This document shows, piece after piece, positions 29,387 to 48,528 of a stretch of 64,000 bases of DNA. The notes beneath the pieces are model-generated. The model was not told the origin of the DNA and ran no database searches. It saw only the letters and a list, made by a program, of their open reading frames with translations. The first letter of the stretch is position 1; every line of letters begins with the position of its first letter. The translations under genes and the position numbers were made by a program. The stretch is taken from positions 157,644 to 221,643 of the IMG/VR virus record IMGVR_UViG_3300026292_000003. One strand, given 5' to 3'.

Positions 29387-29725
29387 ATGAATGATATTCA
29401 AAGATTAAAAGAACTTTCAGGCATCATATCTGAAGCACCAAAACCCGTAGCAAAAATAAGCCAAGGCGGATTTATGGACTGGAAATATTCTAGTCGTGAT
29501 GATATAATAGACTTGGGACATAGTGTAGCCGACTCATTAAAAGTAGAGGGTACATATACTCACGATTTAAACAAAGAATGGGAACAAACTGGTTACATTA
29601 ATTTAGCTATGATACAGAATTGGGAAGAAATCAAAGGACAAATTCCAAGTGAAGATTTAGAACAAATTTTAGAAGATGAAGAAATTATCGAACCTGCAAG
29701 ATGGTTAGATGTAGATTGGGTTTAA
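29387..29725 (+). CDS. Putative internal head protein
   Basis: GATAAATA, AGGAG; MNDIQRLKELSGIISE leader. Confidence 0.6.
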   Translation: MNDIQRLKELSGIISEAPKPVAKISQGGFMDWKYSSRDDIIDLGHSVADSLKVEGTYTHDLNKEWEQTGYINLAMIQNWEEIKGQIPSEDLEQILEDEEIIEPARWLDVDWV

Positions 29726-29726
29726 T

Positions 29727-30962
29727 ATGAAATTTAATGATATAAAACAAATGCCACAAGAAGGCGACATTGTAGGTTTAGAATTTGGCGATGTGATGAT
29801 CGAATCTAAATTTGTGGAATATCTAGATGATGGTATCGTAGTAGAAATGGCTCCTAAAGGCGAACAACTATTAAAAGAATTTTTACCTCTTATACCTGCG
29901 GCAGTATGGGCAGGCGGTGCGGCGTGGAGTGCATATGATGCATGGCAGGCAAAAAAAGCATATGACAGAGGTGAAATTACAAAAGGTCAATTAGCAGGAA
30001 GAATTGGTACTGATGCGGCACTTACAATTATAGGTGGTGGATTAGCAAAAGGTGCAGTAAAAGCAACAAAAGCAGTAGCAAAAATGTTTAAGAAAAAACC
30101 AGATGTAAAAATTGATGTACCAAAAGTAGAACCAGTTAAAACAAATAATGTTCCAGTTAAAACAAACAATGTTCCAGTTAAAACAAATAATGTTCCAGTT
30201 AAAACAAACAATGTTCCAGTTTCAACAACTGGTGGAGCAGTAGCAGGTAAGACAACTAGTAAAGTAGTCACAAAGAAAGTTGACGATATAAAAAATAAAA
30301 ATAAGAATAAAAAGAAGAAAAGTAAACTTAATAGATTTGGTGGTAACCTAGCACCAAATGCAACTATGGGTTCTAATCTATCTGGCGTTGTAAACAAATA
30401 TGGATTTGGTTCAACAGTAAATGCATCTATGCAATATGAAGATATGGATGGTGATCAAGCAAAAGTTTTAAAAGGCTTTGATGCAAAAACACAAGCTGAA
30501 ATAGTAAAACTAAAAGCACGTTATCCACAAGCAGACAATTTAATGTCAGCACTATTAGCAGATGTGGCAAGTAAAAATCAGGCAGGTGTTAACAGTGATC
30601 ATAGACAAGATTTAAAATTTAAAGATTTAGAAAAACGTTTATTTGATTTAGAACAAAAGTTAAATGCAAGAGTTACAGAAGAACTTACTGAAGCGGAATA
30701 TCAAGGACGAAAAGTTGAACTAAACAAACCAACACGTGGTGATGTTAAAAAGTTTAAAGTATATGTCAAAGACCCTAAGACTGGAAACGTTAAGAAAGTA
30801 AACTTCGGACACGGCGGAACAAGTGCTGAAGCAAAAGGTGAAAAGACTATGAGTATTAAAAAGTCTAATCCTGAAAGACGTAAGAGTTTTAGAGCAAGAC
30901 ATAACTGTGATAATCCTGGTCCAAAGACTAAAGCACGTTATTGGTCATGCAAGGCTTGGTAA
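29727..30962 (+). CDS. Putative internal head polyprotein
   Basis: MKFNDI leader; hydrophobic Gly/Ala segment; PVKTNNV repeats; C-terminal RRKSFRARHNC..ARYWSC domain. Confidence 0.65.
   Translation: MKFNDIKQMPQEGDIVGLEFGDVMIESKFVEYLDDGIVVEMAPKGEQLLKEFLPLIPAAVWAGGAAWSAYDAWQAKKAYDRGEITKGQLAGRIGTDAALTIIGGGLAKGAVKATKAVAKMFKKKPDVKIDVPKVEPVKTNNVPVKTNNVPVKTNNVPVKTNNVPVSTTGGAVAGKTTSKVVTKKVDDIKNKNKNKKKKSKLNRFGGNLAPNATMGSNLSGVVNKYGFGSTVNASMQYEDMDGDQAKVLKGFDAKTQAEIVKLKARYPQADNLMSALLADVASKNQAGVNSDHRQDLKFKDLEKRLFDLEQKLNARVTEELTEAEYQGRKVELNKPTRGDVKKFKVYVKDPKTGNVKKVNFGHGGTSAEAKGEKTMSIKKSNPERRKSFRARHNCDNPGPKTKARYWSCKAW
30132..30221 (+). repeat. 21-bp coding tandem repeat, 4.3 copies (PVKTNNV)
   Basis: CCAGTTAAAACAAAYAATGTT repeated. 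Confidence 0.95.
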
Positions 30963-30965
30963 TAA

Positions 30966-31085
30966 ATGAGCAGAAAAACTTCCCCAAAACAAAAAATACA
31001 GAACCTTCGTTCTGCTAAAAAAAAGTTTAAAAGAAAACTTAATTTTAAAATTAAAAAAAGAAAACAAAGACAGGGTTTAGTATAA
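30966..31085 (+). CDS. Very basic 39-aa peptide
   Basis: MSRKTSPKQKIQNLRSAKKKFKRKLNFKIKKRKQRQGLV; TAATG-coupled to next gene. Confidence 0.55.
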   Translation: MSRKTSPKQKIQNLRSAKKKFKRKLNFKIKKRKQRQGLV

Positions 31086-31282
31086 TGGATATTGATAGAC
31101 TAAAAGTATTAGCAGGTGTAAATAAATCTGTTGCTGAATCTCCTGAAGGATCTAACATAAGTATTATTGGATCTGAAAAAGCAAAAATTCAAAGAGAACG
31201 TAAAATTAAACCAGGAACAGACGAATGGTTTAAATTGTGGTTTTCAAGACCACATCTTACTGGTGAAAAACCAACAAAATAG
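31085..31282 (+). CDS. Putative internal head protein
   Basis: MDIDRLKVLAGV leader; IKPGTDEWFKLWFSRP. Confidence 0.65.
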   Translation: MDIDRLKVLAGVNKSVAESPEGSNISIIGSEKAKIQRERKIKPGTDEWFKLWFSRPHLTGEKPTK

Positions 31283-31293
31283 GAGAACGCATA

Positions 31294-31680
31294 ATGGGTA
31301 CGGCAACCCTTTTACTTTTTGTACTAATGTGCAAACACGCGATTTGCGACTTGGCACTACAGTCATTTAGAACACCAACAGACAAATATAAGTATTTCAA
31401 TAAAGGTTTACATATACATTCATTAGATCACGGAATAGGTGCGTTCATTGTACTACTATTCTTTATAAACCCATTGTACGCCGCTCTATTTGCGTTTATT
31501 GACTATATTTTCCATTGGCATATTGACTTTATTAAAACAAATATTACTCGAAAATTTGGCTGGACAAAAGATGGTAAGGCTTTTTGGCGTCTACAAACAT
31601 TTGATCAAATTGCTCACTATGCAACGTATGCTCTAATAGTGTATTTGATATTTAAATGCCCTTTATGCATAATTAGATAA
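31294..31680 (+). CDS. DUF3307-like membrane protein
   Basis: KHAICDLALQ, HSLDHG, HWHIDFIK, DQIAH. Confidence 0.75.
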   Translation: MGTATLLLFVLMCKHAICDLALQSFRTPTDKYKYFNKGLHIHSLDHGIGAFIVLLFFINPLYAALFAFIDYIFHWHIDFIKTNITRKFGWTKDGKAFWRLQTFDQIAHYATYALIVYLIFKCPLCIIR

Positions 31681-31688
31681 ATACAGTT

Positions 31689-34600
31689 ATGCGTATAAAC
31701 GAAGTAGATAGAGAACTAACTCAGACTGAACTAGATCAACTAGAAACCTTTGCAGATAGATTATTTGCAAAGATAGGTATTGATGTAGAATTCACCCGAC
31801 ATTTTTTGGATAGAGTAAATGATGAACGTAATGTAAAACAAATTACGGCAGGTGAATTAACTCGTTTATTCAAACAAGAATACAAAAGATGGGGTAAACA
31901 AATTGCACAATTAGGTCCTGATACAGAAGCAGTATTAAAAGATCTTGCAACCGATGTTAATATACCCTTTGCCTTGCGTTGGGATTCTTCAAATAACGAA
32001 TTAGATCTTATTGCTAAAACAGTAATGAGAAAACCAGATTTCAAAACAAGTAATCAAGAATTTGCAGTAGAATATAAAACTTCAACAAACGATCTTAATA
32101 TTATAATGGAGGGATTACCTGCATTAAATAATGGTGGTGCGTTAGGAACAGGACTTTCTCCAGCTGAATTTAAAACAAGATATGGAATGTCTCCTGCTAA
32201 TGCAAACAAAACACTAGGAAATGTTATTGAATTATTTCCACAAGAAATTAAAAACAATCCAAGATTTAGACCTTTTATTAAACAATATATAATGAATCCA
32301 AAACAACTTGGAAATCTTCAAGCAGTTAATGATAATGTTATAGATCTTGATAAATGGAAAAAGAAAAAATTAAATAATAAATCTTGGAAAAACTTTTTTA
32401 AAAAAGCACCAATAAGAGCAGTAGGTTCGTTCCTTACTTTTCTATTAACACCTACACAATTAGGTGATGGTGAAATTCCAATGGACGAACGTATGGTTAT
32501 GGATACAATAAGCAAAATGTCAGATGCTGATCCACTAGCAATGATGGAACTTATAAAATCATCATATCCAGACACTTATCAAGATAATTGGTATTACAAA
32601 AATGCGGCTGAAAAATATTCAGATCAAGTTATAGCACAATTAGATGGAAAAGTGGATCCTTCTTTACAAAAAGCAGTAGAGAAAGTTAGAAAAGCAAAAG
32701 AGATGGAAAAGTGGAATGCTATGCCACTTGATCCAGGTTTACAAAAAGCATTAGATGCTTCTCAACCAAAAGTAGATTTTACTACAGGACCTGAATTGGG
32801 TCACCCTGCTCCAAAAATTGATCCAGCTCCAGATATGCCAGAGCCTGCTAATGATCCAGAACCAATTAAGCAACCAGAAGTAATTCCGTTTCCACAACCA
32901 AGACCAGAGAAACAACCTGAAGTTCCTGAGCCAGATAAAAAGCCAGAAGTTGAACCAGAAGGTCCAGAACAACCCAAAGAACCAGAAGTAAAACCAGATG
33001 AGAAACCAAAAGTTATTCCGTTTCCACCTGCACCCGAAGTTCCAGAAGTTCCTGAATTGCCAGATCCAACTACAACTCCAGAGCCAATTAAGACTCCAGA
33101 GCCAATTACAACTCCTGAGCCAATTAAGACTCCAGAACCAATTAAGCAACCAGAACCAGAAATTCAACCAGCTCCGGTTAGAGATCCAGATAAGGATCCA
33201 TTACCACAACCAGATTATGAGCCAAAAGATATTCCTATTGAAATACCTGAGCCAATTAAAATTGAGCCAGCACCGGAACCAGTTCCACAGCCAGAACCAA
33301 TTAAGCAACCAGAGCCAATTAAGCAACCAGAAATAGTGCCAACTCCAGGTAATGTTACAGCACCAGATGTTGGAATAATTCCGGCTCCATTACCAGTTCC
33401 AGCTCCAGCACCAGTTCCGCCAGGAATTCAACAAAAACCTTATAGAAGAAAAAGATGGGATACAGGTGGATACAATGACTTATACAAAACTAATTTATAT
33501 AGATGGACACAAAAATACGGAACATTTGAAAATGACAAATTAAATAAAATGTTACTTACACTTGGTGAAAACAGTATTAGTACTAGAACTAACGTTACAA
33601 CAAATAAAACTGGAAATGGTACAAACCAAACATTTAGTAAATATATTCAAAAGACTGGAAACGATGGCGGTACATCTTTAAGTAAAGTATCAAATCTAAA
33701 TAAGACAGCTAGTGGAACTACAGGTACTACTACAAAAAGATTTGTGAGACCAGGAGGAAGTGGAACAAACACAACATTTAACCACGGAACTGGAAAAGTT
33801 ACTAGAACTAATTTTCAATTAAAAGGTCCACAAAGCTGGGCATATGATAAGAAATTAAATTCATCAGTAACTAAAGAAGCTCAAGCAGTAGCAGGTGGAA
33901 AAGTACATAAAAATATTACAGGGCATAACTTAACTTGGAAAGGTGTTAAACAAGAGAGAATAGACTTTGAATTAATTAGTATTGATAATGCTACTAAAAG
34001 TGTTAAATTAGGAATACTTAAACCAGAAGAATTTGCAGGTGAAGTAGCTAACGTATCATTTAAAACACTTCGTAGAGGACCATTTGTAAAAACAGAATTA
34101 AATGAATCAATTATTATGGAAGGCGGAGCAATGCCAGGCGTTGGTGCAATCCATATAGATGAAATAAACCCAACACTAGAACAACTAGAAAAGTCATTAG
34201 GATTAGATTTAAAAAACTTTACATTAGGTAGTGTTGGTAAAAGACAATTTAGCGGTGATATTGATGTAGCGTTAAATTTGAAGCCTGAAGATCTTCCAGC
34301 GTTTGTTGAGAAGCTTAAAAAGAATCCTTTAATTAAGGATATAGCAAAATCAAGTGTTATAATGACAAAAGTACAAATTCAGAATTTTGATAAATCTAAA
34401 TCAGATGGAAGACCACGTACAGGTTTTGTACAATTAGATTTCATGCCAGGTGATCCAGGTTGGTTAAAAACTTACTTTCATTCACCAAGTGAAAAGGAAT
34501 CAAAATATAAAGGTGTGTTCCGTAACGTAATGGTAGCTACAATGGCCGCAGTACATAATAGAGATGACAGTGATGCTGAAGTGGAAGATGGAAGACCTTT

Positions 34601-34916
34601 AGAGAGTAGACGTTTTATGTGGAGCCCCACAGATGGATTAGTACGTGTTCTACGTACTCCAGTTCCAGCAAAGAATGGTAATGGTTATACCAAAAAGAAC
34701 CAAAACAAAGTTATAGATGGACCATGGAAACAAGCTGATGAAATCGCAAAACAACTTGGGTTAAATAGTGCAAAGGACTTAAACAGTTTTGAATCATTGT
34801 TAGATGCAATGAAAAAGAGCTATACTCAAGAAGAGCAGAAGAAAGTCATTGATAATTTAAAAGATAGTAAAGTAGTCCAAGACATTGGTTTACCTGACGA
34901 AATTAAAGATCTATAA
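31689..34916 (+). CDS. Multidomain protein: N-terminal HFLDR domain, Pro/Glu linker, C-terminal Pol-beta-type nucleotidyltransferase
   Basis: MRINEV leader; FTRHFLDRVND; PEPIKQ repeats; LGSVGK...SGDIDV...VQLDF. Confidence 0.75.
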   Translation: MRINEVDRELTQTELDQLETFADRLFAKIGIDVEFTRHFLDRVNDERNVKQITAGELTRLFKQEYKRWGKQIAQLGPDTEAVLKDLATDVNIPFALRWDSSNNELDLIAKTVMRKPDFKTSNQEFAVEYKTSTNDLNIIMEGLPALNNGGALGTGLSPAEFKTRYGMSPANANKTLGNVIELFPQEIKNNPRFRPFIKQYIMNPKQLGNLQAVNDNVIDLDKWKKKKLNNKSWKNFFKKAPIRAVGSFLTFLLTPTQLGDGEIPMDERMVMDTISKMSDADPLAMMELIKSSYPDTYQDNWYYKNAAEKYSDQVIAQLDGKVDPSLQKAVEKVRKAKEMEKWNAMPLDPGLQKALDASQPKVDFTTGPELGHPAPKIDPAPDMPEPANDPEPIKQPEVIPFPQPRPEKQPEVPEPDKKPEVEPEGPEQPKEPEVKPDEKPKVIPFPPAPEVPEVPELPDPTTTPEPIKTPEPITTPEPIKTPEPIKQPEPEIQPAPVRDPDKDPLPQPDYEPKDIPIEIPEPIKIEPAPEPVPQPEPIKQPEPIKQPEIVPTPGNVTAPDVGIIPAPLPVPAPAPVPPGIQQKPYRRKRWDTGGYNDLYKTNLYRWTQKYGTFENDKLNKMLLTLGENSISTRTNVTTNKTGNGTNQTFSKYIQKTGNDGGTSLSKVSNLNKTASGTTGTTTKRFVRPGGSGTNTTFNHGTGKVTRTNFQLKGPQSWAYDKKLNSSVTKEAQAVAGGKVHKNITGHNLTWKGVKQERIDFELISIDNATKSVKLGILKPEEFAGEVANVSFKTLRRGPFVKTELNESIIMEGGAMPGVGAIHIDEINPTLEQLEKSLGLDLKNFTLGSVGKRQFSGDIDVALNLKPEDLPAFVEKLKKNPLIKDIAKSSVIMTKVQIQNFDKSKSDGRPRTGFVQLDFMPGDPGWLKTYFHSPSEKESKYKGVFRNVMVATMAAVHNRDDSDAEVEDGRPLESRRFMWSPTDGLVRVLRTPVPAKNGNGYTKKNQNKVIDGPWKQADEIAKQLGLNSAKDLNSFESLLDAMKKSYTQEEQKKVIDNLKDSKVVQDIGLPDEIKDL

Positions 34917-34945
34917 TTGACTTTTTTCAATATATTAGTTATAAT
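34917..34945 (+). promoter_or_regulatory. sigma70-type promoter; ATG 5 nt after -10 (leaderless)
   Basis: TTGACT-N17-TATAAT-AAGCC-ATG. Confidence 0.7.
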
Positions 34946-34950
34946 AAGCC

Positions 34951-36129
34951 ATGCCAGAAAAATACTGCATATACACGAATAATTTCACCTTTGTAGACAA
35001 TGATGGCTATGTTGCGTTATGTTGTAAGAACTTAAAAAACAAACTAACACAATATCATATCAAAGATTACAAATTAAGCGAAATATGGAATAGCCCAGAA
35101 ATGCATTCCGTAAGGCAAGAAATTGCCAGCGGAGGAGAACCTATGGGTTGTTTTAAATGTTATGATCCAGAACGTGATGGTGTACGTAGTTTTAGACAAA
35201 AAGCATTAGGTATGATTAACAAAGGTGTACCCTTTGAAGATGAAAAAATACACGCATTAGATTTAAGACTAGGTAATGTATGCAACTTAAGATGTGTAAT
35301 GTGTTTCGCTGGTAATAGTAACAAAATTTTAAAAGATCATAAGCAAATGGCAGACCATTTTAAATGGAAAGAAGGTCGCCTAGAAAAAGAAGCAGAAAAG
35401 TATCACAAAAGCAATTATGACTGGAGTGATGATGAAAGAGCCTGGGAAAACATTATTACCAGTGTAGATAAAAATTTAAAACACGTTTACCTAGCAGGTG
35501 GTGAACCATTTTACTTAAAAAACTTTCCAACAACTGTAGAACGTTTAGGTACACTAGCACCAGATGCTAGATTTGTTATTAACTCAAACGGTACAAGACT
35601 ATTAAGAGAAAAAGATCTAAAACAACTGAAAAAGGTTGAGAATGTATTCATTAGATTTAGTGTTGACGGTTGGGGTGGTGCAGATGAATGGATTAGACAA
35701 GATACAAAATGGGAAGAAAAACTACAAGTAATGGATCAATATTACAAACACTTTAAATTAAGAGTTTGGGATATTACTGCAAATAGTTTAGGTGTTAGAC
35801 AAATACCAAAGCTAATAGAATATCTTTGGGAGCATTATCCTGAAGCAAAAGTACAAATTAGACCCGTAGTTAATAAGACAGAAATATTAATGGAAAATAT
35901 TCCTGATAGACTAAAAGCAAAGCCTTTGGAATTCTTTGAGAAACACAAAAATAAACTTGAAGGTGTTGATCATGTAATTAACGAGATGCGTAAACCATTC
36001 AATCCAGATCCTAACAGAGCAAAAACAGTTAAGCATTGGGTTGATTACTACGATAATACCGGCGTAGTAAAACTAGGTGACTTTGATCCAGAGCTTTCAG
36101 ATTGGATTCAAAGTAATGGGCAACAATAA
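34951..36129 (+). CDS. Radical SAM/twitch protein
   Basis: CNLRCVMC, AGGEP; N-terminal YC..LCC..CFKC. Confidence 0.9.
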   Translation: MPEKYCIYTNNFTFVDNDGYVALCCKNLKNKLTQYHIKDYKLSEIWNSPEMHSVRQEIASGGEPMGCFKCYDPERDGVRSFRQKALGMINKGVPFEDEKIHALDLRLGNVCNLRCVMCFAGNSNKILKDHKQMADHFKWKEGRLEKEAEKYHKSNYDWSDDERAWENIITSVDKNLKHVYLAGGEPFYLKNFPTTVERLGTLAPDARFVINSNGTRLLREKDLKQLKKVENVFIRFSVDGWGGADEWIRQDTKWEEKLQVMDQYYKHFKLRVWDITANSLGVRQIPKLIEYLWEHYPEAKVQIRPVVNKTEILMENIPDRLKAKPLEFFEKHKNKLEGVDHVINEMRKPFNPDPNRAKTVKHWVDYYDNTGVVKLGDFDPELSDWIQSNGQQ

Positions 36130-37333
36130 TTTTTGTAGTATACCTTGGATACATTCAGCAACTAAAACAAATGGTGCTAGTAGAGTATGTTGTTTGATGA
36201 GCAACTACGAACAAGGTAATGGCGGTCAAACAGGACATAACTTCAAAACAGATACTATAGAAGAAATACACAATAGCGAATATACTCGTAATCTTCGTAA
36301 GAAGTTTTTAAAGGGTTATAAACCAATTGAATGTAATACGTGTTGGGTTAAAGAGAAGAATGGTGGACAAAGTAGACGTATGTTTACTAATAAAATGTAC
36401 AAGCATTTAATTGACTATGAGAAAGCATTAAAGATCACAAAAGAAGATGGCAGTACAGATCAAATGCCAGTATATTGGGATTTACGTTTTGGTAACTTAT
36501 GTAATCTAAAGTGTGTTATGTGTGGACCACAAAGTAGCAGTATGTGGTATAAAGATTGGGCTCATATGTATGATACGGATCATTTTGAAGATTCAGGAGA
36601 AAAAATATTTTTTAAAGATAAAGGGGTTGACAGTAACGTATACGATTGGTATACAAGTAGCAACTTCTGGGAGCAAATGGAAAAGAATATAGATCAGCTA
36701 GAACATATATACCTAGTTGGTGGCGAGCCTATGCTTATTGAACAACATTATATATTTTTACAAAAGCTAATAGATAAAGGCGTAAGTCAAAATGTTACAT
36801 TGGAATATGATACAAATATTACTAACGTACACCAACGTGCTATTGAGCAATGGAGTAAGTTTAAAACATTAATGTTAAGAGTAAGTATAGATGATTATGG
36901 AGAACAAAATGATTATATACGTTTTCCTAGCAAATGGTATAAGTTAGATGAGAACATTAAACGTATTAAAGAATTAGTACCAAATACAAAAGTTGAAATA
37001 AGTATAACTTGGCAAATGCTTAATGCATATACATTTTTAAATTTAGTAGAGCATTTTAAAGATTACTTTATTAATATTAGAATATTGTCTGCACCAGAGA
37101 TATTTGATCCAAAACACTTACCAAAACAGGCTAAATTAGAGCTTATTGATATGTACAATAGTTCTGTACATAAAGATAAACTAAAGCATCTAATAAGCTA
37201 TCTAACAAATAACTTAAATAATAATAGATTATTATACCAAGAATCAGCAGATTTTCTAAATAGGCTAGATGTATTAAGAGGTACAGATTGGCCCAAAACG
37301 TTCAAGCAACTGCATAAATCGATAAATATATAA
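36116..37333 (+). CDS. Radical SAM/twitch protein
   Basis: CNLKCVMC, GGEP; FCSIPW..VCC..CNTC. Confidence 0.9.
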   Translation: MGNNNFCSIPWIHSATKTNGASRVCCLMSNYEQGNGGQTGHNFKTDTIEEIHNSEYTRNLRKKFLKGYKPIECNTCWVKEKNGGQSRRMFTNKMYKHLIDYEKALKITKEDGSTDQMPVYWDLRFGNLCNLKCVMCGPQSSSMWYKDWAHMYDTDHFEDSGEKIFFKDKGVDSNVYDWYTSSNFWEQMEKNIDQLEHIYLVGGEPMLIEQHYIFLQKLIDKGVSQNVTLEYDTNITNVHQRAIEQWSKFKTLMLRVSIDDYGEQNDYIRFPSKWYKLDENIKRIKELVPNTKVEISITWQMLNAYTFLNLVEHFKDYFINIRILSAPEIFDPKHLPKQAKLELIDMYNSSVHKDKLKHLISYLTNNLNNNRLLYQESADFLNRLDVLRGTDWPKTFKQLHKSINI

Positions 37334-37346: not shown

Positions 37347-37799
37347 ATGAAAGTTAATGAAATAGTAACAGAACAAGGTGTTATAGTCAAAGGCGTAAAC
37401 ACAACAGTCGATGTTCAACCTGGTGAAACAGAGCGTCAGGCGGCTAAACTATTCCCAATGAATAAAGGTGGGAAACCAGCATCATTAATTAATGATAAAG
37501 TTCGTAAGAATAGCAATCCACACGTTCTTTTTAATATGGGCTTAACTGAAGAGCAAATACTACTATTAGAAAAAGTAGTTAAGCAATCAAAGCCTATGAA
37601 AGTATTAATGAACCTAGCAAGTAGAAATGATAATAATCCATTTCCAGTAAAAATGGGTGATATTATAGTTAATGTTACACCCGATACTGCTAGAAGAGTT
37701 ATACACCATTATTTTAATTCAAGTGATTTTAGACAAAACGAAATTGAGAAGATGTTAAATGATGCAATGGGATTTAAAAAACTTGTAAAGGAGATTTAA
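37347..37799 (+). CDS. Putative internal head protein
   Basis: GATAAATA, AAGGAG; MKVNEIVTE leader; GVNTTVDV. Confidence 0.65.
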   Translation: MKVNEIVTEQGVIVKGVNTTVDVQPGETERQAAKLFPMNKGGKPASLINDKVRKNSNPHVLFNMGLTEEQILLLEKVVKQSKPMKVLMNLASRNDNNPFPVKMGDIIVNVTPDTARRVIHHYFNSSDFRQNEIEKMLNDAMGFKKLVKEI

Positions 37800-37985
37800 A
37801 TGGACAAAAAGGAAATGTATACCGAGTATGGGTATAGAGGTACTGTTGAATTACAATTAGAAAAAGACCGTAACAAGAAATTAGTAGAAGATAACAAAAA
37901 GCTAGTTGAAGATAATAAAAAACTAATAGAAGCTAATGAGAAATTAATTGAGGACTTAAGAAAGGCTGAAGAGAAATTAATATGA
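37800..37985 (+). CDS. Small coiled-coil protein with NKKLVED heptad repeats
   Basis: AAGGAG SD; four heptad repeats. Confidence 0.6.
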   Translation: MDKKEMYTEYGYRGTVELQLEKDRNKKLVEDNKKLVEDNKKLIEANEKLIEDLRKAEEKLI

Positions 37986-38281
37986 GAATAAATGAAATTA
38001 TTACTAAAGAATTTGCTCCAACAAAAACAGCAAAGCAAGTGGCACACAATGCCCAAGCTGATGCCGCATTCTGGAAAAGCAAACTTGCACCTACTCCATT
38101 AAATAAAGATACAATGGTAATTACTGGTCCTAATGCACAAAACAAGATTGATAATAAAATTGCAAAAGCTAACAGTTTAAGTAAGGCGGCAAATGTAAAC
38201 CCTAATGCATTTACTAACAATTTACAAAAATCTTTTAGTAATAATACATCAAAATTTAAAACTAAATTTGGAAGATCATAA
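37982..38281 (+). CDS. Basic Asn/Lys-rich putative internal protein
   Basis: MRINEIITKE leader; no Glu afterwards. Confidence 0.65.
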   Translation: MRINEIITKEFAPTKTAKQVAHNAQADAAFWKSKLAPTPLNKDTMVITGPNAQNKIDNKIAKANSLSKAANVNPNAFTNNLQKSFSNNTSKFKTKFGRS

Positions 38282-38628
38282 TGAAAATAAGTGAAATTGT
38301 AACAAAGAAAACAGGTGCAGGTACAGTAAAAACTGTAGGTGGAAATGAGATTTCTAGAAGCACTCCTAATATAGGTGGACTACAAACAACTCAATATGCA
38401 GATGGATCTATCAAAAGTACATTCAATACTAACATAGGTGGAACATCTACAAATTTTACAAAAGTAAATGGAATTAATACTAACACAAATATGGCTTCTG
38501 GTAACCTTGCACTTAAAACAACAAACACTGGTAACAATAAATTTAAATTAAATAAAGCCACGTATAATATGGGCGGTGGACAAGGTACCCTAGTAGCACA
38601 GCCAGGTAAGTGGTCAGTAAGGAAGTAG
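38281..38628 (+). CDS. Basic Thr/Asn/Gly-rich putative internal protein
   Basis: MKISEIVTK leader. Confidence 0.65.
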   Translation: MKISEIVTKKTGAGTVKTVGGNEISRSTPNIGGLQTTQYADGSIKSTFNTNIGGTSTNFTKVNGINTNTNMASGNLALKTTNTGNNKFKLNKATYNMGGGQGTLVAQPGKWSVRK

Positions 38629-38630: not shown

Positions 38631-39005
38631 ATGAGAATAAATGAAATTACAAAAGAAGGATTTGACGACGCAGGGCAAAAAATTTACAAAGGTAATACAA
38701 CTCGTGTTGTTCATACACCAGTAGCAGATAAAAATATTAGTGTAGCAACCCAACGTATTAATAAATTTGCTAGTGATAGAGCCAGAGATGATCTAACTTA
38801 TAAAGGTGCTAAAATAACTGTACCAGGAACTAATCAAGCTATTGCTAAAGCTAAGAGTAATACAGTTACAGCATACAACAAGCAAGATAAAATAGATCAA
38901 AGATCAGGTGCAGGAACTTCTTACATTACTAAAGGCAAGCCAATTAAGTTTGGTAACAATGATAATGTTAAACTTAATATGTTCAGTAGTAAGGACAAAG
39001 AATGA
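38631..39005 (+). CDS. Basic putative internal protein
   Basis: MRINEITKE leader; AAGGA SD. Confidence 0.65.
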   Translation: MRINEITKEGFDDAGQKIYKGNTTRVVHTPVADKNISVATQRINKFASDRARDDLTYKGAKITVPGTNQAIAKAKSNTVTAYNKQDKIDQRSGAGTSYITKGKPIKFGNNDNVKLNMFSSKDKE

Positions 39006-39886
39006 AAATTAATCAAATCATAAATGAAGCAGTAGATTCAAAAGCTGAAATATATGTTGATATGGATGGCGTATTAGCAGACTTTTTTGGCGTATGGACT
39101 AAAATGGTTGGCGTTAAGAATTGGAAAGAAGTTAAAGACGTTGACTCTGCATTAGATATGATTAGAAGTCAAAAAGATTTTTGGATTAATTTACCACTTA
39201 CACCCAATGCCTCAAAGTTATTAAATTCAATTAAAAAAGTAAAAGGAAACTATACTATATTAAGTTCTCCTTTACCAGATGATCCAAATTCAGAACCACA
39301 AAAACGTGAATGGGTTAAAAAGATGCTTTCAGGTTTTGCACCTAAAAGAGTTATTATAACGCATAATAAAAGTGCGTATGCAAAACAACCTGATGGAACT
39401 CCTAATGTATTAATTGACGACTATGGAGATAATATTCAAAAATGGGAAAACGCAGGTGGAATAGGAATACAACACTCAGATAAAAATGCAGATGCAACAG
39501 TTTCAAAATTAGAAGAAGCTGATTTTGTTCATGCAATAAGCAGATTTATGAATAGAAATATACGTCCTGGTTTCTATAAAAGAGCCGCAAAAAAGTTTCA
39601 TGAATGGTTAAAAGGTCAAGCACCTTACAGACATAGCCTAGGATATTATGCTATGGAATGGGGTCATCAGTATAAACATATAGATTGGAGAAATCTAAAA
39701 CAAGCATATGAAGTTATGTTTGGAGATGATGTATTAGTAGAAGGCAAAGAACCTAAACTTGTAAAAGATAAAAAACAAAAGAATTTAAGCAGTATGGATA
39801 AACCTACAAAGTATGAAAGACGTAAAAATTATACTAAAGCTGATGAAGGTGAAGAGCCAAAACAAAAAAAAGAAAAGAAAAAATGA
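39002..39886 (+). CDS. HAD 5'(3')-deoxyribonucleotidase-like protein with leader and basic tail
   Basis: MKINQIINE; YVDMDGVLADF, ILSS, LIDD, WENAGGIGI. Confidence 0.85.
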   Translation: MKINQIINEAVDSKAEIYVDMDGVLADFFGVWTKMVGVKNWKEVKDVDSALDMIRSQKDFWINLPLTPNASKLLNSIKKVKGNYTILSSPLPDDPNSEPQKREWVKKMLSGFAPKRVIITHNKSAYAKQPDGTPNVLIDDYGDNIQKWENAGGIGIQHSDKNADATVSKLEEADFVHAISRFMNRNIRPGFYKRAAKKFHEWLKGQAPYRHSLGYYAMEWGHQYKHIDWRNLKQAYEVMFGDDVLVEGKEPKLVKDKKQKNLSSMDKPTKYERRKNYTKADEGEEPKQKKEKKK

Positions 39887-40077
39887 AAATAAAAGATGTA
39901 TTACAACTTCCAGCAATCAATATTGGTGATGAAGTCTATGTAGGTAGATTTAAAAATCGTAAAGCTACAGTAACAGGCTTTGGAGTTGATAATCATAATC
40001 AGCCTATATTAAAAACAAACAAGGGCGAACACAAGTTATTCAAGCCTAGAATAGCAAAATTAATGAAAGAAGAGTAG
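39883..40077 (+). CDS. Small SH3/KOW-like protein
   Basis: MKIKDV; INIGDEVYVGRFKN. Confidence 0.6.
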   Translation: MKIKDVLQLPAINIGDEVYVGRFKNRKATVTGFGVDNHNQPILKTNKGEHKLFKPRIAKLMKEE

Positions 40078-40715: not shown

Positions 40716-40717
40716 AT

Positions 40718-41479: not shown

Positions 41480-41510
41480 TGTATATTAAACAAATTAGAT
41501 AAATACTTGT

Positions 41511-42005
41511 ATGAAAGTATTTGATATCATAAACGAAGATGCTGACGGTGGAAGTTCAATGGCAGGTAACTTTGCTAGTGTTAGTTTTCCTTTGTTTGGC
41601 AAAAAGAAGCAGATTAGACGTGCAGTTGATCCTAAAGGATATTTAGGTGATGGCAAACTCAAGCTACCCAAAGTAGGTTATAACAAACCTGTTAAAGTAG
41701 ATAACGTAGCTGAGTCTGTAAACGAGAAGGTATACAAAAAGAACCCAGATGATCCTATGGATCCAGAAGTTCATGTGCCGGGTATGGCAGTATACAGTCT
41801 TAAAGGTCTTGAAAGAGATGTAAAAGGTATGTTTGAAGATTTAGCAAAACAAGCAGGTGATGGTAATTGGGAAAACATAGATTATTACTTACATCAGCAC
41901 GGAGTTTTATCAGCTAAAGTAAAAGCGATAGCAAGTACATATGAAGATTTAGAAAATACGAGAAAACGTGGAGGCAGAGCTTCTCAAGGTATTATAAAAA
42001 GGTAA
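41511..42005 (+). CDS. Putative internal head protein
   Basis: MKVFDIINE leader; internal AESVNE. Confidence 0.65.
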   Translation: MKVFDIINEDADGGSSMAGNFASVSFPLFGKKKQIRRAVDPKGYLGDGKLKLPKVGYNKPVKVDNVAESVNEKVYKKNPDDPMDPEVHVPGMAVYSLKGLERDVKGMFEDLAKQAGDGNWENIDYYLHQHGVLSAKVKAIASTYEDLENTRKRGGRASQGIIKR

Positions 42006-42010
42006 CGACA

Positions 42011-42802: not shown

Positions 42803-42811
42803 GAGCATATC

Positions 42812-45637
42812 ATGAGAATACTAGACTTAGGCGAAGCTGGTTACGAAGGACAATCAGAAGCACAAAAACATTATTTTTATATTGAAGGCGATTACGATCA
42901 AGATCGTGGAATAAGTGAAAAAGATTGTGAAGAGATTACAAAACAACTTGTTGATATGGGATTAAAAGCTCATTGTCAACCAGATGAGTCTAGACAAGGT
43001 GTTGTAGAAATTAACACTTACAGTGGTCATACAACTATAGCAGATGCACTAGCTAAAGCTGGATACGAAGCTGATGCAGTTGGCGACTATGCAGGTTTTA
43101 CTTTTCATGAAGGTGAAGCAAATATTATAGCAGAAAATCCAAAAAAATTTACAAAAGCAGACTTTGACGCAAACGAAGACAAAAACTATCACACAGAAAA
43201 CGGTGTTGAATTAGCTAAAGCATTTGGTACTCCAGAAGAGATTGAGCAAATGGAACAAATTGCAAAAAATCATTATACTCGTGGACATATACTATCACAT
43301 GAAATAGATGCTCGTAGTGAAATTGTTGGAAAATATCTTCCATCATTAGAATCACAAGAAGAAGCAATGAGTAAAATGACTGAAGGCGATTTACAACCAG
43401 GTGATATAGAATTACTAAAACCAATGGTTGATATGAAACCAGAAGTATTAAAAGTTTATGCAAGAAATATTATAAAGAAATATCCACACCTTAAAGATAA
43501 CGTTATGAGAATGTTACCTGAATCACAAGAAGAAGATTTTATTGTTACATACAACGGAACACAAAAAGCAAATGATGCAGATTCTGCATTAGATATTTTA
43601 CAAGATAATGGATATGATGTAGAACGTGACTTTGATGGTACGTTTAAAGTATCTTATGAAGGTGTACAAAAAGCAGATAATATATATGACGTATTAGATT
43701 TATTACGTGATGAAGGTTATGAAGTACAAATTGCTGAACGTAAACTTTCTAAAGGTGAAGAAGATAAAAAAGAAGATATTGTAAAAGGCATGAAAAAAGA
43801 TAAAGACGGATTCAAAGAAAGATATGGCAAAGATGCAGAAGCAGTAATGTATGCGACAGCAACTAAATTAGCCAAAGAAGAAAATATAGTTGAAGACGAT
43901 GAACAAGCACTTGCACGTCAATTAATGCGTAAAGATGGAATTGATCCAGATAAAGTAAGTGACGGTGGAGTATTTTCCAAGTATCGTGAAAAGGCAAAGA
44001 AACAACTATCAGAAGATTTTATGGACGACAGAAAATATCAGAGCTTAGAAGAATTAAGAGACAAGTTAGTAGATATTGAAAAACATATTAAACGTTTAGG
44101 CGTTATGGACGGTGCCACAGAGTGGGAAGGTAAACACCTAACAGGTACAGCCGATATACACGACCAACTTACTACTATGTATAAAGATATTGCAGGACTA
44201 CAAGGTGCAGTAGGTAGAGCATTAAAAATAGTACCTGCAGAACAAAATCCATCTACAAAAGAATTTAAAAAGAAATATGGAATGGGCGAAGCAGACTCAA
44301 TGGGAATGAACAAGTATGGACTTGCGGCGGCAAAGAAAAATGGCAAGTTTATCTCATATAGAAATGGTAAAAAAACAGGTGAGTTTGATTCTATGGAAGA
44401 ACTTTCAAAACACCAACTTGATTTAATTAAAGATGAATCAGTAGAAGTAAAAGAAGGTGTAAATGATGTAGATAAAATTCATCAACTTACAGATGAGCTT
44501 TATAGAGAATTAGTTGATTTCCAAAACGAAGAGTTTGATGAAAACATTGAAGAGCTTATTGGACACCTAGCAGAATTCAAAGCTAAACTTGAAGGTGATA
44601 CAGGATCATTTTCAGAAGATACTATTAAAGAAGCATATATCAATAATACAAAAGATGCTATTGACATTTTAGGACGGCTACGAGGCAAAGGTAAGCAGTT
44701 AGAAAGAGGCCAACAAGAATACAAAGGTAACCTACCAAATGAGTACGTTAATGATGTATGGGACGTATGGACTTGGATGGAAAGTAAACTTGGTGGTGGA
44801 GCAGAAGCAAATGATCCAAAACTTAAAGCAATTATGCAAGAAGTATTTTGGCTCAGAGGCGAAGCTAAAAAAATGGAAAGAAATTACAGTCCAGATCTAG
44901 AGCGTTCAGAAGATCATATGGGAGCGGCAGGTTTTGGAAATATGGTAGTGAATACTTTATATCCATTAATGCAATGGCTAGATATGAATGATAGTAAGTT
45001 AAACGAATTTGATATTAAAAAATCATTTAATAATATTGCTAACAACGTTAAAAACACTATGTCAAATGTTGTTAAAGGAAATCCATTAAGAACTAAAATG
45101 AATAAAAATGCAAATAAAAATGGACCAAGTTTAGCAAGACAGATTAATTGGGGTGGAAAGTATGAGTCAAAAGATGATATAAACGAACTTGATACATTTG
45201 CACCAAAAACAGATTACATAAAAGGTCCAGGTGGCGAGTTTTATAAAATTGAATATCGTAACAATAGTGGACTAACAGGTAAACGTAAAGATGATACGGC
45301 TAGATTCGTTTCAGTGAATCCTGCAAGTGATCAAGAAGTATCTGCATTAAATTTAGATGATATGATTGCTAAAGGTAATACAAGTATTCATCAAGGACAC
45401 GATCATCAAGGTGGATTACCTTGGAGTGATAAAGACATTGCTGTTTATGCATATGGCGGCGATGATTATGAAGAAGGAATTCCTAACAATGCAAAAATGA
45501 AATTAATTAAAGTAATGACTACAGAAGCTGAAAAGAAAAGGAAAGCAGAGCTAGGCACGAAAATACGTTCGTGGAGAGAAACAAAAGCTGACATGAAGAA
45601 GAAAATTGAAGCTTCTAAACCAGGAGATAAAAAATGA
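42812..45637 (+). CDS. Large acidic modular putative internal polyprotein
   Basis: MRILDLGE leader; modules separated by xxE linkers; RYG...VMYATATK module. Confidence 0.65.
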   Translation: MRILDLGEAGYEGQSEAQKHYFYIEGDYDQDRGISEKDCEEITKQLVDMGLKAHCQPDESRQGVVEINTYSGHTTIADALAKAGYEADAVGDYAGFTFHEGEANIIAENPKKFTKADFDANEDKNYHTENGVELAKAFGTPEEIEQMEQIAKNHYTRGHILSHEIDARSEIVGKYLPSLESQEEAMSKMTEGDLQPGDIELLKPMVDMKPEVLKVYARNIIKKYPHLKDNVMRMLPESQEEDFIVTYNGTQKANDADSALDILQDNGYDVERDFDGTFKVSYEGVQKADNIYDVLDLLRDEGYEVQIAERKLSKGEEDKKEDIVKGMKKDKDGFKERYGKDAEAVMYATATKLAKEENIVEDDEQALARQLMRKDGIDPDKVSDGGVFSKYREKAKKQLSEDFMDDRKYQSLEELRDKLVDIEKHIKRLGVMDGATEWEGKHLTGTADIHDQLTTMYKDIAGLQGAVGRALKIVPAEQNPSTKEFKKKYGMGEADSMGMNKYGLAAAKKNGKFISYRNGKKTGEFDSMEELSKHQLDLIKDESVEVKEGVNDVDKIHQLTDELYRELVDFQNEEFDENIEELIGHLAEFKAKLEGDTGSFSEDTIKEAYINNTKDAIDILGRLRGKGKQLERGQQEYKGNLPNEYVNDVWDVWTWMESKLGGGAEANDPKLKAIMQEVFWLRGEAKKMERNYSPDLERSEDHMGAAGFGNMVVNTLYPLMQWLDMNDSKLNEFDIKKSFNNIANNVKNTMSNVVKGNPLRTKMNKNANKNGPSLARQINWGGKYESKDDINELDTFAPKTDYIKGPGGEFYKIEYRNNSGLTGKRKDDTARFVSVNPASDQEVSALNLDDMIAKGNTSIHQGHDHQGGLPWSDKDIAVYAYGGDDYEEGIPNNAKMKLIKVMTTEAEKKRKAELGTKIRSWRETKADMKKKIEASKPGDKK

Positions 45638-46077: not shown

Positions 46078-46093
46078 TACAAAGGACTAAATT

Positions 46094-46237
46094 ATGAAGT
46101 TACATAAAGGTTTTGTAGAACACGAAACTACGCCGAAGAAGACAAGCATTGGGAACAATAAATCCAGACATAAAACTTCTTCTATGAATAAGCATAAGAG
46201 GCGTTCATACAAGCCGTATAGAGGACAAGGAAAATGA
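46094..46237 (+). CDS. Basic 47-aa phage peptide ending YRGQGK
   Basis: AAGGA SD; ATGA overlap with next gene; missed by track. Confidence 0.7.
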   Translation: MKLHKGFVEHETTPKKTSIGNNKSRHKTSSMNKHKRRSYKPYRGQGK

Positions 46238-47436
46238 GACTAGATCAACTATTTAAAGAAAATGATACTACAGTAAAAACTATGTCTATGCCTGAGAAGG
46301 TAGCAGTATTTGATAGATTACAACCAGGTCAAGAAATTGGCTTATGGTTTGATTCAGTTATTAGAAGAGCTGACAAGTATAAACCCTTTGTAGTTGGTAG
46401 AAAAACAAGATCAAAATTACGTCCTTTAGAAAAAATTACACTATTACAAAAAAGCAAAGATGGTGGAACAGGTGGTATGAAATACTACCTATATAAGAGA
46501 AATGGTGACAATGTTAGTTTAGCAATGGGCGATATGGCCGCAAGTCTAGTAGACATTAAAGAAGCTAAAGCATATGACATAAACGAAGCTGATACAACTA
46601 TAATGGAAAGAATAGTACTAGATATAGACTATAGTAGAAATCCAGAAGCATTACTTAAAGCAGTTAATACAATGGGTAAAAGATTAGACCTTACATTAAT
46701 GAATGCACCACAAGCAATTAAAGATTTAAAAGAAAAAGGCTTTGCTAGAATAGAAGGTAAAGATGCAGACATTATGTCATTTGTAAATTATCTATATTCA
46801 AAAGGTATTGAGCCAAACTACGATATTCAAAATATGGATAAAGTACAAACACCAGGTTTAAATGCTAATCCAAATATGCCTGCATTTATAGGCAAGAAAG
46901 AAGTACCAGTTGAAGAAGGTATTCCATTATCCACAATGTACGGACTTGTTATTGATGGCAAGTATGTTGCTAAAGGCTCAAAAGAAAAAATGAGAAAAAT
47001 GCAAAAAGAAAAAGGTGGTACAGTTTATAATGCTCCTGGCAAAAAAGTAGGAGACAGTGAAGGTAAAGTTAAAGAAGGACATTCTAATACTAGACAGCAA
47101 TCTCAAACTATGTTAAAACTAGAAGAGTTAAGAGATATGATTATGGTACTAGATATGAATGATGATTCAAAAACATCAGCACTTACAGCATTAGATCAAG
47201 TAGCTGATGATATAACAGTTCTTGAATCAAAAGATGGAGCTAATAGTTCTACATATGGTGGACCCAGAGCGGCACAGATATATTTAAAAACTATAGACGA
47301 CTATGCTATGATGCTTAAAGGCAAAGATGGCGATGTAGAAGAAATAGGATATAGAATTCAAAATGCGGCAGATGATTTAAGAAAACATCTAAAACTTGAT
47401 CCTACTAATTTAAGAACAGCATTTAACGAAAAGTAA
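46234..47436 (+). CDS. Putative internal head polyprotein
   Basis: MRLDQLFKE leader; DIKE/DINE/VEE/VKE linkers. Confidence 0.65.
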   Translation: MRLDQLFKENDTTVKTMSMPEKVAVFDRLQPGQEIGLWFDSVIRRADKYKPFVVGRKTRSKLRPLEKITLLQKSKDGGTGGMKYYLYKRNGDNVSLAMGDMAASLVDIKEAKAYDINEADTTIMERIVLDIDYSRNPEALLKAVNTMGKRLDLTLMNAPQAIKDLKEKGFARIEGKDADIMSFVNYLYSKGIEPNYDIQNMDKVQTPGLNANPNMPAFIGKKEVPVEEGIPLSTMYGLVIDGKYVAKGSKEKMRKMQKEKGGTVYNAPGKKVGDSEGKVKEGHSNTRQQSQTMLKLEELRDMIMVLDMNDDSKTSALTALDQVADDITVLESKDGANSSTYGGPRAAQIYLKTIDDYAMMLKGKDGDVEEIGYRIQNAADDLRKHLKLDPTNLRTAFNEK

Positions 47437-47448
47437 TAGGAGAGAATA

Positions 47449-48528
47449 ATGAGATTACATGATTTATTTTTATTAAAAGAATACGATGATTTAGAACAAG
47501 AAAAACAAGGTATTATCTCTGCTATATCTGGACTTCGTGCTGACAACGAAGAAGATGCTAAACTATTAGATAGAATTTATAAAGTATTAAACACAGGCCA
47601 AATTGGTCAAAATATTTCAAATGCTTTCACAGTACCATTAGAAGGTGAACCATTAAGTGATAAAGAAAAAGCTCTAGTAGTACAAGACATGACTACTATT
47701 ATTTCTCAATCAGATAATGATTTTAAATCACTTTCAGGTATGACAGAAATGTTAGAAAAAGGTGGCGTTGTTGATGTTGGAGCATTAGATTCTCCACTAA
47801 CTACATTCAGCAATGTATTTCAACACCCAGCGGCAGTTAAAGTATTTCATGCATTAAAGAATTATGGAACTGGTAAAAAACAAAAAGGCCCAGGCGAATA
47901 TGCTTTGGCTTGTTTAACTAATAAAATTAGATTAGCGGCAGGTGAAGGTGACATTGAAGTTGATGGCATTGGAAAAGTAGAATTAAAATCAGCAGTATCT
48001 AGCACAGGTGGACGTATAGGTTACGGTGGTGGATCACAAAAAGCTAAAAGAGCAGTACTAGACAAATACGCAGAAAGAATTCCAACAGTTATGGGTGCTA
48101 TTGGTGGTAAAGGTGGTTCGTTGGGATTAAGTAAATTTGTTCCAGCATTAGCACAAGACTTACCACTTAATGATGCAGACAGTAAGAAATTAAGAGAACA
48201 GATTGCAAGTGAACTATTAACAATGGATATGGAAAACTTTGCACAACCAATTATAAAAGCATTTGGTAGTACAGACAATGTAGAACAAATTGAAGACGAA
48301 TATTTAAAAGCAAACTTTGCATGGTACAAAGATAGAGATGATTTTGATGCCCTATTACTATGTAGTTTCCCGAATGAAAAATTTGCTATGATTAAAAATG
48401 ATAGTGATTTAATAGCCTTTAGAAGAGGCGGACAAGCTAACTCAACAAGTATAAGTATTATTCCTACACAAGCTGGTGCAGGAAGAGAACAATGGGCTCA
48501 GCTAACTCTAAATAAGGCTAAGGTATAA
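47449..48528 (+). CDS. PD-(D/E)xK nuclease-like protein with targeting leader
   Basis: MRLHDLFLLKE; KGPGE...GDIEVDG...VELK. Confidence 0.6.
   Translation: MRLHDLFLLKEYDDLEQEKQGIISAISGLRADNEEDAKLLDRIYKVLNTGQIGQNISNAFTVPLEGEPLSDKEKALVVQDMTTIISQSDNDFKSLSGMTEMLEKGGVVDVGALDSPLTTFSNVFQHPAAVKVFHALKNYGTGKKQKGPGEYALACLTNKIRLAAGEGDIEVDGIGKVELKSAVSSTGGRIGYGGGSQKAKRAVLDKYAERIPTVMGAIGGKGGSLGLSKFVPALAQDLPLNDADSKKLREQIASELLTMDMENFAQPIIKAFGSTDNVEQIEDEYLKANFAWYKDRDDFDALLLCSFPNEKFAMIKNDSDLIAFRRGGQANSTSISIIPTQAGAGREQWAQLTLNKAKV

Follow-up and report, generated by a model that had tools for sequence, protein, structure and literature searches.

The window analysed here is the whole 64,000-nucleotide stretch that forms the end of the 221,643-bp marine viral contig IMGVR_UViG_3300026292_000003 (JGI Ga0208277_1000001), with a GC content of 33%. 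It contains a locus, at 29.4–48.5 kb, in which otherwise unrelated proteins share one of two short N-terminal sequences. Twelve proteins begin with a type-1 leader, for which the full form M-[KR]-hydrophobic-x-[DEQ]-[ILV]-x(1-4)-E is proposed, and two carry a type-2 tag of the form DIxRLKxL[AS]G (Table 1). The layout of the type-1 leader is comparable to that of the capsid-targeting sequence (CTS) of the phage T4 internal proteins, and the region is proposed to be a large, fast-changing "internal protein" locus comprising small basic proteins, enzymes and large proteins.

All twelve type-1 starts named in a first-pass annotation of this DNA, made from the sequence alone, were recovered. The pattern scored was ^M[KR][ILVF].[DEQ][ILV]. 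Within the window, it was present in 12 of 25 locus genes and in 1 of 76 other genes (Fisher 5e-8); when all six frames were scanned, it followed 15 of 2551 ATG codons, 12 of the 15 being the locus gene starts. The scan of the phage's own genome covered 147,671 bases of the same contig (positions 73,973–221,643), assembled with zero overlap mismatches. The leader was observed at 15 gene starts in these 148 kb, 12 of them inside the 19-kb locus, corresponding to 12 of 26 genes in the locus (29.7–48.5 kb) and 3 of 188 genes elsewhere (Fisher 2.6e-10). The motif is therefore far from equally common genome-wide, which the annotation had named as the outcome that would count against its idea. The feature is real and strongly non-random.

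The residues at positions 3 and 6, and often also at position 7, are hydrophobic in the twelve window starts. Glutamate is present at residues 8–11 in 9 of the 12 leaders, compared with 18% of other genes (binomial 3e-5), and precisely at residue 9 in six. The description of a leader ending in Glu thus holds for nine proteins and fails for those at 29727, 38281 and 39883. The residue two before the Glu is Ile or Leu in the leaders at 39002, 41511, 42812 and 47449.

The late-promoter-like motif GATAAATA is present in 15 copies in the window, with 7.7 expected. Nine copies lie 13–63 nt upstream of plus-strand gene starts, and four of these head transcription units of the locus (Table 1), in agreement with the earlier remark that several of the genes follow late motifs. 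The other five precede the genes at 17797, 63152, 23369, 25828 and 26248, the last three of which lie in a stretch syntenic with genes gp284–290, encoding virion proteins, of the Agrobacterium jumbo phage Atu_ph07. In Atu_ph07 itself, the T4-type TATAAATA is found upstream of the protease gene gp204 and of several stand-alone leader genes. The placement of GATAAATA, identified by its match to the consensus, would fit late expression of the locus. The spacing between GATAAATA and the ATG is 13 nt at 31689 and 41511; if the motif is a -10-like promoter, as T4 TATAAATA is, these mRNAs would be nearly leaderless. A 183-aa protein with an RyR domain (window 26610–27161; Pfam 2.5e-8) is among the likely virion genes with GATAAATA upstream.

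Table 1. Features of the locus and leader-type starts elsewhere (window coordinates unless the contig is named; aa, amino acids; pI, isoelectric point; ORF, open reading frame).
Feature	Coordinates	Strand	Leader or tag	Remarks
GATAAATA	29359..29366	+		28 nt upstream of 29387 start
112-aa acidic protein	29387..29725	+	type 2, MNDIQRLKELSGIISE	pI 4.3; start MNDIQRLKELSG
411-aa protein	29727..30962	+	type 1, MKFNDI (MKFNDIKQMPQE)	KTNNVPV x4 repeat; ~93-aa widespread C-terminal domain
39-aa very basic ORF	30966..31085	+	untagged	pI 12.0; coding status uncertain
65-aa protein	31085..31282	+	type 2, MDIDRLKVLAGVNKSVAE (MDIDRLKVLAG)	
GATAAATA	31676..31683	+		13 nt upstream of 31689 start
1075-aa protein	31689..34916	+	type 1, MRINEVDRE	
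Two radical-SAM/SPASM paralogues	34951..37333	+	untagged	inside locus
GATAAATA	37321..37328	+		26 nt upstream of 37347 start
150-aa basic protein	37347..37799	+	type 1, MKVNEIVTE	pI 9.5
99-aa basic protein	37982..38281	+	type 1, MRINEIITKE	pI 10.4; size and charge like T4 internal proteins
115-aa basic protein	38281..38628	+	type 1, MKISEIVTKK	pI 10.4; nearby Glu absent
124-aa basic protein	38631..39005	+	type 1, MRINEITKE	pI 9.9
294-aa HAD 5'-nucleotidase (NT5C family)	39002..39886	+	type 1, MKINQIINE	Pfam 3.4e-7; PHROG deoxyribonucleotidase 2.7e-28
64-aa basic protein	39883..40077	+	type 1, MKIKDVLQ	kept in relatives
GATAAATA	41498..41505	+		13 nt upstream of 41511 start
164-aa protein	41511..42005	+	type 1, MKVFDIINE	
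941-aa acidic protein	42812..45637	+	type 1, MRILDLGE	
400-aa protein	46234..47436	+	type 1, MRLDQLFKE	residues 17-110 homologous to part of 462-aa Melnitz protein
359-aa protein	47449..48528	+	type 1, MRLHDLFLLKE	weak nuclease-like leads
96-aa ORF, outside locus	9901..10191	+	leader-like, MKLQDLKM	sole such start in window outside locus
381-aa DUF6267 protein, outside locus	own contig 119,731-120,876		MKVNEIIVG	adjoins helicase
109-aa protein, outside locus	own contig 124,896-125,225		MRYAELFE	GTG start

Relatives of the phage and the Atu_ph07 virion

The family-B DNA polymerase encoded in the window showed 47–48% identity to the enzymes of two jumbo phages, Sinorhizobium Phosso and Agrobacterium Atu_ph07; with Rak2-like phages, GAP32 and CBB among them, the identity was approximately 45%. 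The succession of DnaJ, ClpA, virion-protein and DNA polymerase genes resembles the arrangement in Atu_ph07. Elsewhere on the contig, at 74–157 kb, there are genes for a T4-type large terminase, a tail sheath and gp13- and gp15-like proteins, together with ribonucleotide reductase, primase/helicase and Clp genes; an identical terminase is also present in an ENA assembly of 329,779 bp. Judged by the terminase, tail sheath, gp13/gp15 and polymerase homologues, the phage is therefore placed in the wider T4 superfamily as an uncultured member. A permuted transfer-messenger RNA of alphaproteobacterial type (window 4617–4959; Rfam RF01849, 97 bits, and RF04321, 98 bits; ARAGORN tag peptide AEDNFAIAA) suggests an alphaproteobacterial host and, taken with the 33% GC, hints at a marine alphaproteobacterium such as SAR11. 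A nucleotide search of the GenBank phages with the locus gave no match, and no mention of the clade was found in the searchable literature.

The virion proteome of Atu_ph07 has been published from electrospray ionisation tandem mass spectrometry (MS), with 140 of 714 proteins listed in Table S5, 131 of them above the authors' threshold (PMC6102473). The whole 490,380-bp genome was scanned for ATG ORFs of >=40 aa beginning with M[KR][ILVFWYM].[DEQ][ILV], and the genes were matched to Table S5 by gene order and by mass to 0.01–0.02 kDa. The leader pattern fitted 27 ORFs, comprising 23 annotated gene starts, 2 internal methionines of longer genes and 2 unannotated ORFs, which were not part of the MS search database. 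All 23 of the 23 annotated leader genes were in the virion list (hypergeometric P ~1e-17), namely gp43, 46, 47, 53–63, 196, 199, 381, 408, 482, 487, 548, 561 and 672. When counted by cargo family, 11 of 11 were in the list (P = 1e-8). The presence of tagged proteins in mature virions holds for this cultured relative.

The leaders read M-[KR]-x-x-[DEQ]-[LI]-x-E in 19 of the 23 proteins, and [LI]-x-E at residues 6–8 is the cut-site rule of the T4 prohead protease gp21. Atu_ph07 gp204 is the homologue of T4 gp21, with 33% identity (PMC6102473, Table S3); our own BLASTP gave 32% identity (E = 5e-18). The leader genes gp196 and gp199 flank the portal gene. N-termini with hydrophobic-x-E are also present in the head module, in the capsid protein (..AALLE/G), gp205 (..ALLE/G), gp206 (..IINE/S), gp213 (..LLINE/D) and the scaffold-like gp214 (..KLLE/G). 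The 87-kDa gp53 had its highest abundance in a low-mass gel band, which suggests that it is processed.

The two unannotated ORFs (MF403008.1) encode 139 aa (22449–22868, plus strand, MRIIDLEY) and 92 aa (315248–315526, minus strand, MRLFDLFEK), and from their starts they are likely to be missed virion-protein genes. On the contig studied here, the DUF6267 and 109-aa leader genes lie in a second, smaller region, which is syntenic with the Atu_ph07 gp30–66 virion cluster. Leader-type starts were also seen in Phosso (MRLSEIINES, MKAIEILSES) and in the head-module loci of other uncultured relatives (MRINELLTE, MKINEILTE, MRYLEILKE).

Cargo proteins and the type-2 tag

The cargo had been described as unrelated, and all-against-all BLASTP agreed: past the first 11–23 residues, the tagged proteins did not resemble one another, and the two untagged radical-SAM genes were the sole paralogues within the locus. 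The tagged cargo ranges from 64 to 1075 aa and includes distinct folds, such as the HAD nucleotidase and a Pol-beta-like nucleotidyltransferase domain, while several of the proteins are small and basic (99–164 aa, pI 9.1–10.4).

The 1075-aa protein is comprised of an N-terminal domain with 66% identity to a 149-aa protein of the OM43 phage Melnitz (Kyanoviridae, T4-like), a long Pro/Glu-rich middle repeat, PEP[IV]K[QT]PE (window 32800–33300), and a C-terminal domain homologous to Atu_ph07 gp65, which is in the virion list (Table S5). By Atlas features and structure, the C-terminal domain resembles a Pol-beta-type nucleotidyltransferase. A phmmer search of the PDB with the 1075-aa protein returned nothing useful. 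Among the earlier cargo labels, that of HAD nucleotidase was upheld by Pfam and PHROG; that of nuclease, for the 359-aa protein, is tentative, its basis being weak Atlas leads and a D...ELK motif only. For the 359-aa protein, tblastn found no match, and the AlphaFold model from ten orthologues (mean pLDDT of 51) was unusable and was not used. The profile searches assigned the other locus cargo proteins to no known family.

The HAD 5'-nucleotidases point to the leader being an added module. Those with a leader (window 39002, its orthologue in the related contig L004, and the Melnitz protein beginning MKSIVEVTSINEE) have an extension of 12–13 residues before the catalytic DxDG motif, and in the alignment the leaderless homologues (window 16348, Atu_ph07 gp301 and gp310) begin directly at the fold. 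The leaderless gp301 and gp310 are absent from the virion list. Similarly, among ten orthologues of the 359-aa protein, the indels are confined to the leader, immediately before an invariant EYDDL (MRLHDLFLLKE/YDDL and MRLRNLFE/YDDL).

Across 21 related contigs, with 63–100% identity on the 359-aa protein, tagged genes were gained, lost, split or replaced with the leader retained, and approximately 15 cargo families were counted in this small sample. A type-2 gene was missing altogether from one relative. The orthologue of the 411-aa protein in the related contig L337 begins MRLNDLFEND, and that of the 115-aa protein in L004 begins MRINEIVTKK. Four locus cargo domains have homologues in a single gene cluster of Melnitz, the proteins of which begin with T4-type tags (MKKFSEIIEA, MKKFSELTSE, MKNFKNHIAEE and MQGFKTFLSE, in addition to MKSIVEVTSINEE).

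The C-terminal domain of the 411-aa protein, of approximately 93 aa (residues 319–411, window 30681–30959; KKFKVYVK...RKSFRARHNC...YWSCKAW), was found in >440 IMG/VR stretches, with up to 88% identity, fused to many different N-terminal parts across marine viral contigs. Its partners often start in the T4 manner (MKTFQEYLKEA, MKTLKDYLTEA, MRTFKEYFEQ) and also in that of the window (MKINEIVNK, MRLNDLFEN, MRYLDIVEE). Marine phages may use this domain very commonly as a module of packaged proteins. The KTNNVPV units of the same protein form a tandem repeat (window 30140–30230).

A 47-aa ORF with a pI of 10.9 (window 46094–46237) lies between tagged genes and is kept in the close relatives L001 and L006; like the 39-aa ORF at 30966, it may encode a protamine-like peptide that binds DNA. 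The 83-aa protein at 45634 was considered as a prohead protease inhibitor from a weak PHROG match (E 2.8e-5), which spans residues 42–80 and profile positions 5–44 of 165, and it was not counted as evidence. Six radical-SAM proteins are encoded in the window (12295–13482, 13472–14785, 27163–28071, 34951–36129, 36077–37333 and 50673–51926), with an N-terminal SPASM-type Cys cluster in those at 34951, 36077 and 50673. Further copies were seen beside UvdE in relatives (L337).

The type-2 core was defined as [LIM][KR].[LIM][AS]G[ILVM]. Among the window ORFs it is present just twice, at residues 6–7 of the 29387 and 31085 proteins. Both had been pointed out in the first-pass annotation, which did not spot their likeness to a scaffold-like tail. 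The 490-kb genome of Atu_ph07 contains the core four times, in gp111, gp257, gp214 and one spurious ORF. It is N-terminal in gp111 and gp257, and both (2/2) appear in the virion list, where their masses match exactly. In gp214, which is scaffold-like and encoded directly before the capsid gene (L027:7876-9120), it is at the extreme C-terminus. Among related phages, 98 of 124 protease loci and 61 of 80 capsid-gene loci contained a long ORF ending in the type-2 tail. The consensus of this scaffold-like tail is ..[DE]I.x[IL][KR][KR]LAG[IL], for example ..EIIRIKKLAGI before the stop codon, and the tail of low-GC relatives, ..AEIIRIKKLAGI before the stop, aligns residue-for-residue with the window tags NDIQRLKELSGI and MDIDRLKVLAGV. 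No such tail was seen in Rak2-like isolates or in T4 gp22, and its absence from T4 gp22 sets the type-2 tag apart from T4.

From this likeness, the type-2 proteins probably enter the prohead via the contact made by the scaffold tail. A wider proposal, which we advance tentatively and as less likely than not, is that the clade has two separate head-loading addresses: the CTS-like leader, and the tail sequence of the scaffold C-terminus ([DE]-I-x-R-[LI]-K-x-L-[AS]-G-[ILV]), which when copied to the N-terminus of a small protein would mimic the contact of the scaffold tail. If true, the loading of cargo through such mimicry would be a mechanism undescribed for any phage.

Proposed role of the leader and alternative explanations

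We consider it likely that the type-1 leader is a prohead-targeting propeptide of the T4 CTS kind, loading cargo into the head. The central idea of the first-pass annotation, a T4-CTS-like tag on many unrelated proteins, is supported by the Atu_ph07 virion list, the match to the T4 layout and the [LI]-x-E end of 19 of the 23 Atu_ph07 leaders and of four window leaders, and also by the leader extension of the HAD enzymes, the four cargo domains shared with Melnitz and the variation of cargo behind a retained leader.

In the proposed mechanism, late promoters of the GATAAATA type would drive synthesis of the tagged proteins late in infection. Through its short, amphipathic leader, the cargo would dock on the scaffold core during prohead assembly, and the shell would close round the docked cargo. 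A gp21-family prohead protease would then cut after the Glu following the [ILV]-x pair and free the cargo inside the head, from which it would exit together with the DNA when the next cell is infected. We infer the docking on the scaffold core, the cleavage, the location in the head interior and the ejection.

Several observations weigh against this interpretation. Cleavage after Glu is predicted from the motif; three of the 12 window leaders have no nearby Glu, and in five the residue two before the Glu is Val, Thr, Phe or Asp. In Atu_ph07, 13 of the 23 leader proteins are paralogous to each other. With Atu_ph07 gp204, gp214, gp215 and gp198 as queries, tblastn located no prohead protease, scaffold or capsid gene in contig positions 73,973–221,643; the search for head genes also took in 47–87 kb of a 258-kb relative contig. 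When viral contigs were searched with gp204, with a protease alignment, with a degenerate DNA pattern and with the capsid protein, hundreds of other phages matched and this contig never did, and a protein search with the capsid sequence gave so many close matches that this genome could not be singled out; a gp21-family protease is present in Atu_ph07 and in >600 related contigs. Furthermore, whole-virion MS cannot separate the head interior from the tail or surface fibres, and the Atu_ph07 authors suspected that the gp31–76 cluster might form unusual outer structures (PMC6102473).

The last two points bear on the alternative that survives best, which we nevertheless regard as unlikely: that the leader is an uncleaved virion-assembly signal acting outside the head interior, in a whisker, hair, tail anchor or the capsid exterior. 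Atu_ph07 has whisker-like structures, and the gp31–76 cluster accounts for many structural proteins that its authors left unexplained (PMC6102473). The gp54–62 paralogues also run near their predicted mass, although a loss of 1 kDa would be invisible. An outer-structure signal is, however, difficult to reconcile with the Glu at a fixed distance after Leu or Ile in 19 of 23 Atu_ph07 leaders, and with the Glu in 9 of the 12 window leaders, as a gp21-type protease would select. The layout of the leader is that of the T4 CTS, and much of the cargo is made up of small basic proteins and soluble enzymes rather than fibre-like proteins.

It is very improbable that the leader is a tag for the phage's own Clp machinery, that is, a degron or unfolding signal timing turnover. 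The genome does encode a ClpA/B-like ATPase (20464–22725), with ClpP, ClpX and ClpS directly upstream of the window, and there are seven Clp-family genes in Atu_ph07, but in Atu_ph07 the proteins with the tag persist as stable parts of the virion, and the conserved Glu and the T4 CTS match would be left unexplained.

The chance is slighter still that the shared start has no peptide function and reflects limits on translation initiation at high AT content or the shuffling of a 5' gene cassette. While the codons AAA, ATT, AAT and GAA rank as the most frequent at 33% GC, and highly expressed genes commonly have Lys as their second residue, approximately 185 other genes of the same genome, strongly expressed structural genes included, are without the motif, and the leader predicts virion presence in Atu_ph07. 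The leaders use differing codons, their upstream regions are unrelated, and Atu_ph07, at 37% GC, keeps the pattern and has Trp (TGG) at residue 3; from the codon differences and this Trp, it is the peptide, rather than the DNA, that is under selection. A remnant of an old duplicated gene family, with bodies diverged beyond recognition, is equally implausible, since, true as it is that the 13 Atu_ph07 proteins are paralogues, the window cargo is of different folds and sizes and the HAD enzyme has leaderless homologues, so that the leader is an added module.

If the prohead-targeting tag works as proposed, the head-carried proteins of a large, mostly uncultured group of jumbo phages, which includes marine relatives of Atu_ph07, could be read from genome sequence, and related leaders are also found in T4-like marine phages. 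The leader alone would then predict the packaged proteome, as for the 23 proteins of Atu_ph07, with >=15 candidates in this marine phage, and would account for >20 "unknown structural proteins" in the published Atu_ph07 proteome. Packaged proteins would be the first to reach the infected cell and would thus be prime candidates for counter-defence and host takeover. The T4 targeting principle would be old and widespread, with some lineages using 12–23 tagged proteins, some of >1000 residues. Both tags could be transferred to foreign proteins as portable signals for their packaging in large (jumbo) phage heads, and the second hints at a possible new loading route via the binding site of the scaffold.

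Comparison with known head-loading systems

In T4, IPI, IPII, IPIII and Alt carry the CTS, which the prohead protease gp21 cleaves off (Mullaney & Black 1996; PMC3012670, PMC9026906). Propeptides of 10–19 residues direct the proteins to the prohead core; residues 4 and 7 matter most for this targeting and residues 8 and 10 for processing, and a foreign protein can be packaged with just the first 10 residues (PMC9026906). The prohead proteases of the T4 and phiKZ families always cut after Glu, in a short motif, and the gp21-type protease is active only within the prohead (PMC5694885). In the T4 record, IPII and IPIII begin MKTYQEFIAE/A and IPI begins MKTFKEFTSTTTPVSTITE/A, and the internal proteins have 95–193 aa with a pI of 8.9–9.5.

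The window leaders share with the T4 CTS a tag of approximately 10 residues, a Met-Lys/Arg start, two spaced hydrophobic residues and, in part of the set, an end of the form [hydrophobic]-x-Glu. The hydrophobic residues at 3, 6 and 7 with Glu at 9 reproduce the T4 spacing (4, 7 and 8, with Glu at 10) shifted by one residue. The tag is likewise carried by otherwise unrelated, often small basic proteins, encoded by clustered genes in variable loci with late-promoter-like motifs. It differs in being one residue shorter before the hydrophobic pair (MKINQIINE compared with MKTYQEFIAE) and in having Arg as frequently as Lys at residue 2. The scale is also different, with 12 tagged proteins in the locus, >=15 in 148 kb and 23 in Atu_ph07, compared with approximately four in T4; the window cargo reaches 1075 aa, a second tag type exists and there is no homologue of the T4 internal proteins. 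The leader motif is not mentioned in the Atu_ph07 and RaK2 papers, and no description of it was found in the literature on jumbo or marine phages. The best explanation is a CTS-type head-loading tag, a known mechanism that would be employed here far more extensively than in T4 and together with a second tag resembling the scaffold tail; this variant appears to be undescribed for the clade.

The hypervariable internal-protein loci of the T-even phages encode diverse basic proteins that keep a CTS-like start (PMC9026906, PMC3012670), and close relatives of the phage studied here similarly swap cargo with the leader retained. The present lineage is unlike the T-even phages in being marine and far removed, with a probably alphaproteobacterial host and a genome of jumbo size.

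In the giant phages phiKZ and SPN3US, a gp21-related protease processes the propeptides of head and ejection proteins, with S/A-x-E as its site (PMC5694885, PMC10052503). Paralogue families are common to both systems, as would be many head-internal proteins and cleavage after Glu, both of which are predicted here. The phiKZ and SPN3US propeptides, however, are mostly >100 residues long with a small residue two before the Glu, whereas the window tags have 8–11 residues with, in several, Leu, Ile or Val at that position, as in T4. An inner-body or ejection system of phiKZ type, with long propeptides cut at S/A/G-x-E and a phiKZ-like set of head genes, does not fit this tag length, the hydrophobic residue that often stands two before the Glu or the T4-, Rak2- and Atu_ph07-like relatives.

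For the type-2 tag, the nearest comparison is with phage scaffolding proteins such as that of P22, which have C-terminal coat-binding tails. The tag matches the last ~11 residues of the scaffold-like protein of the clade; unlike a P22-type tail, the peptide is present at the N-terminus of small non-scaffold proteins.

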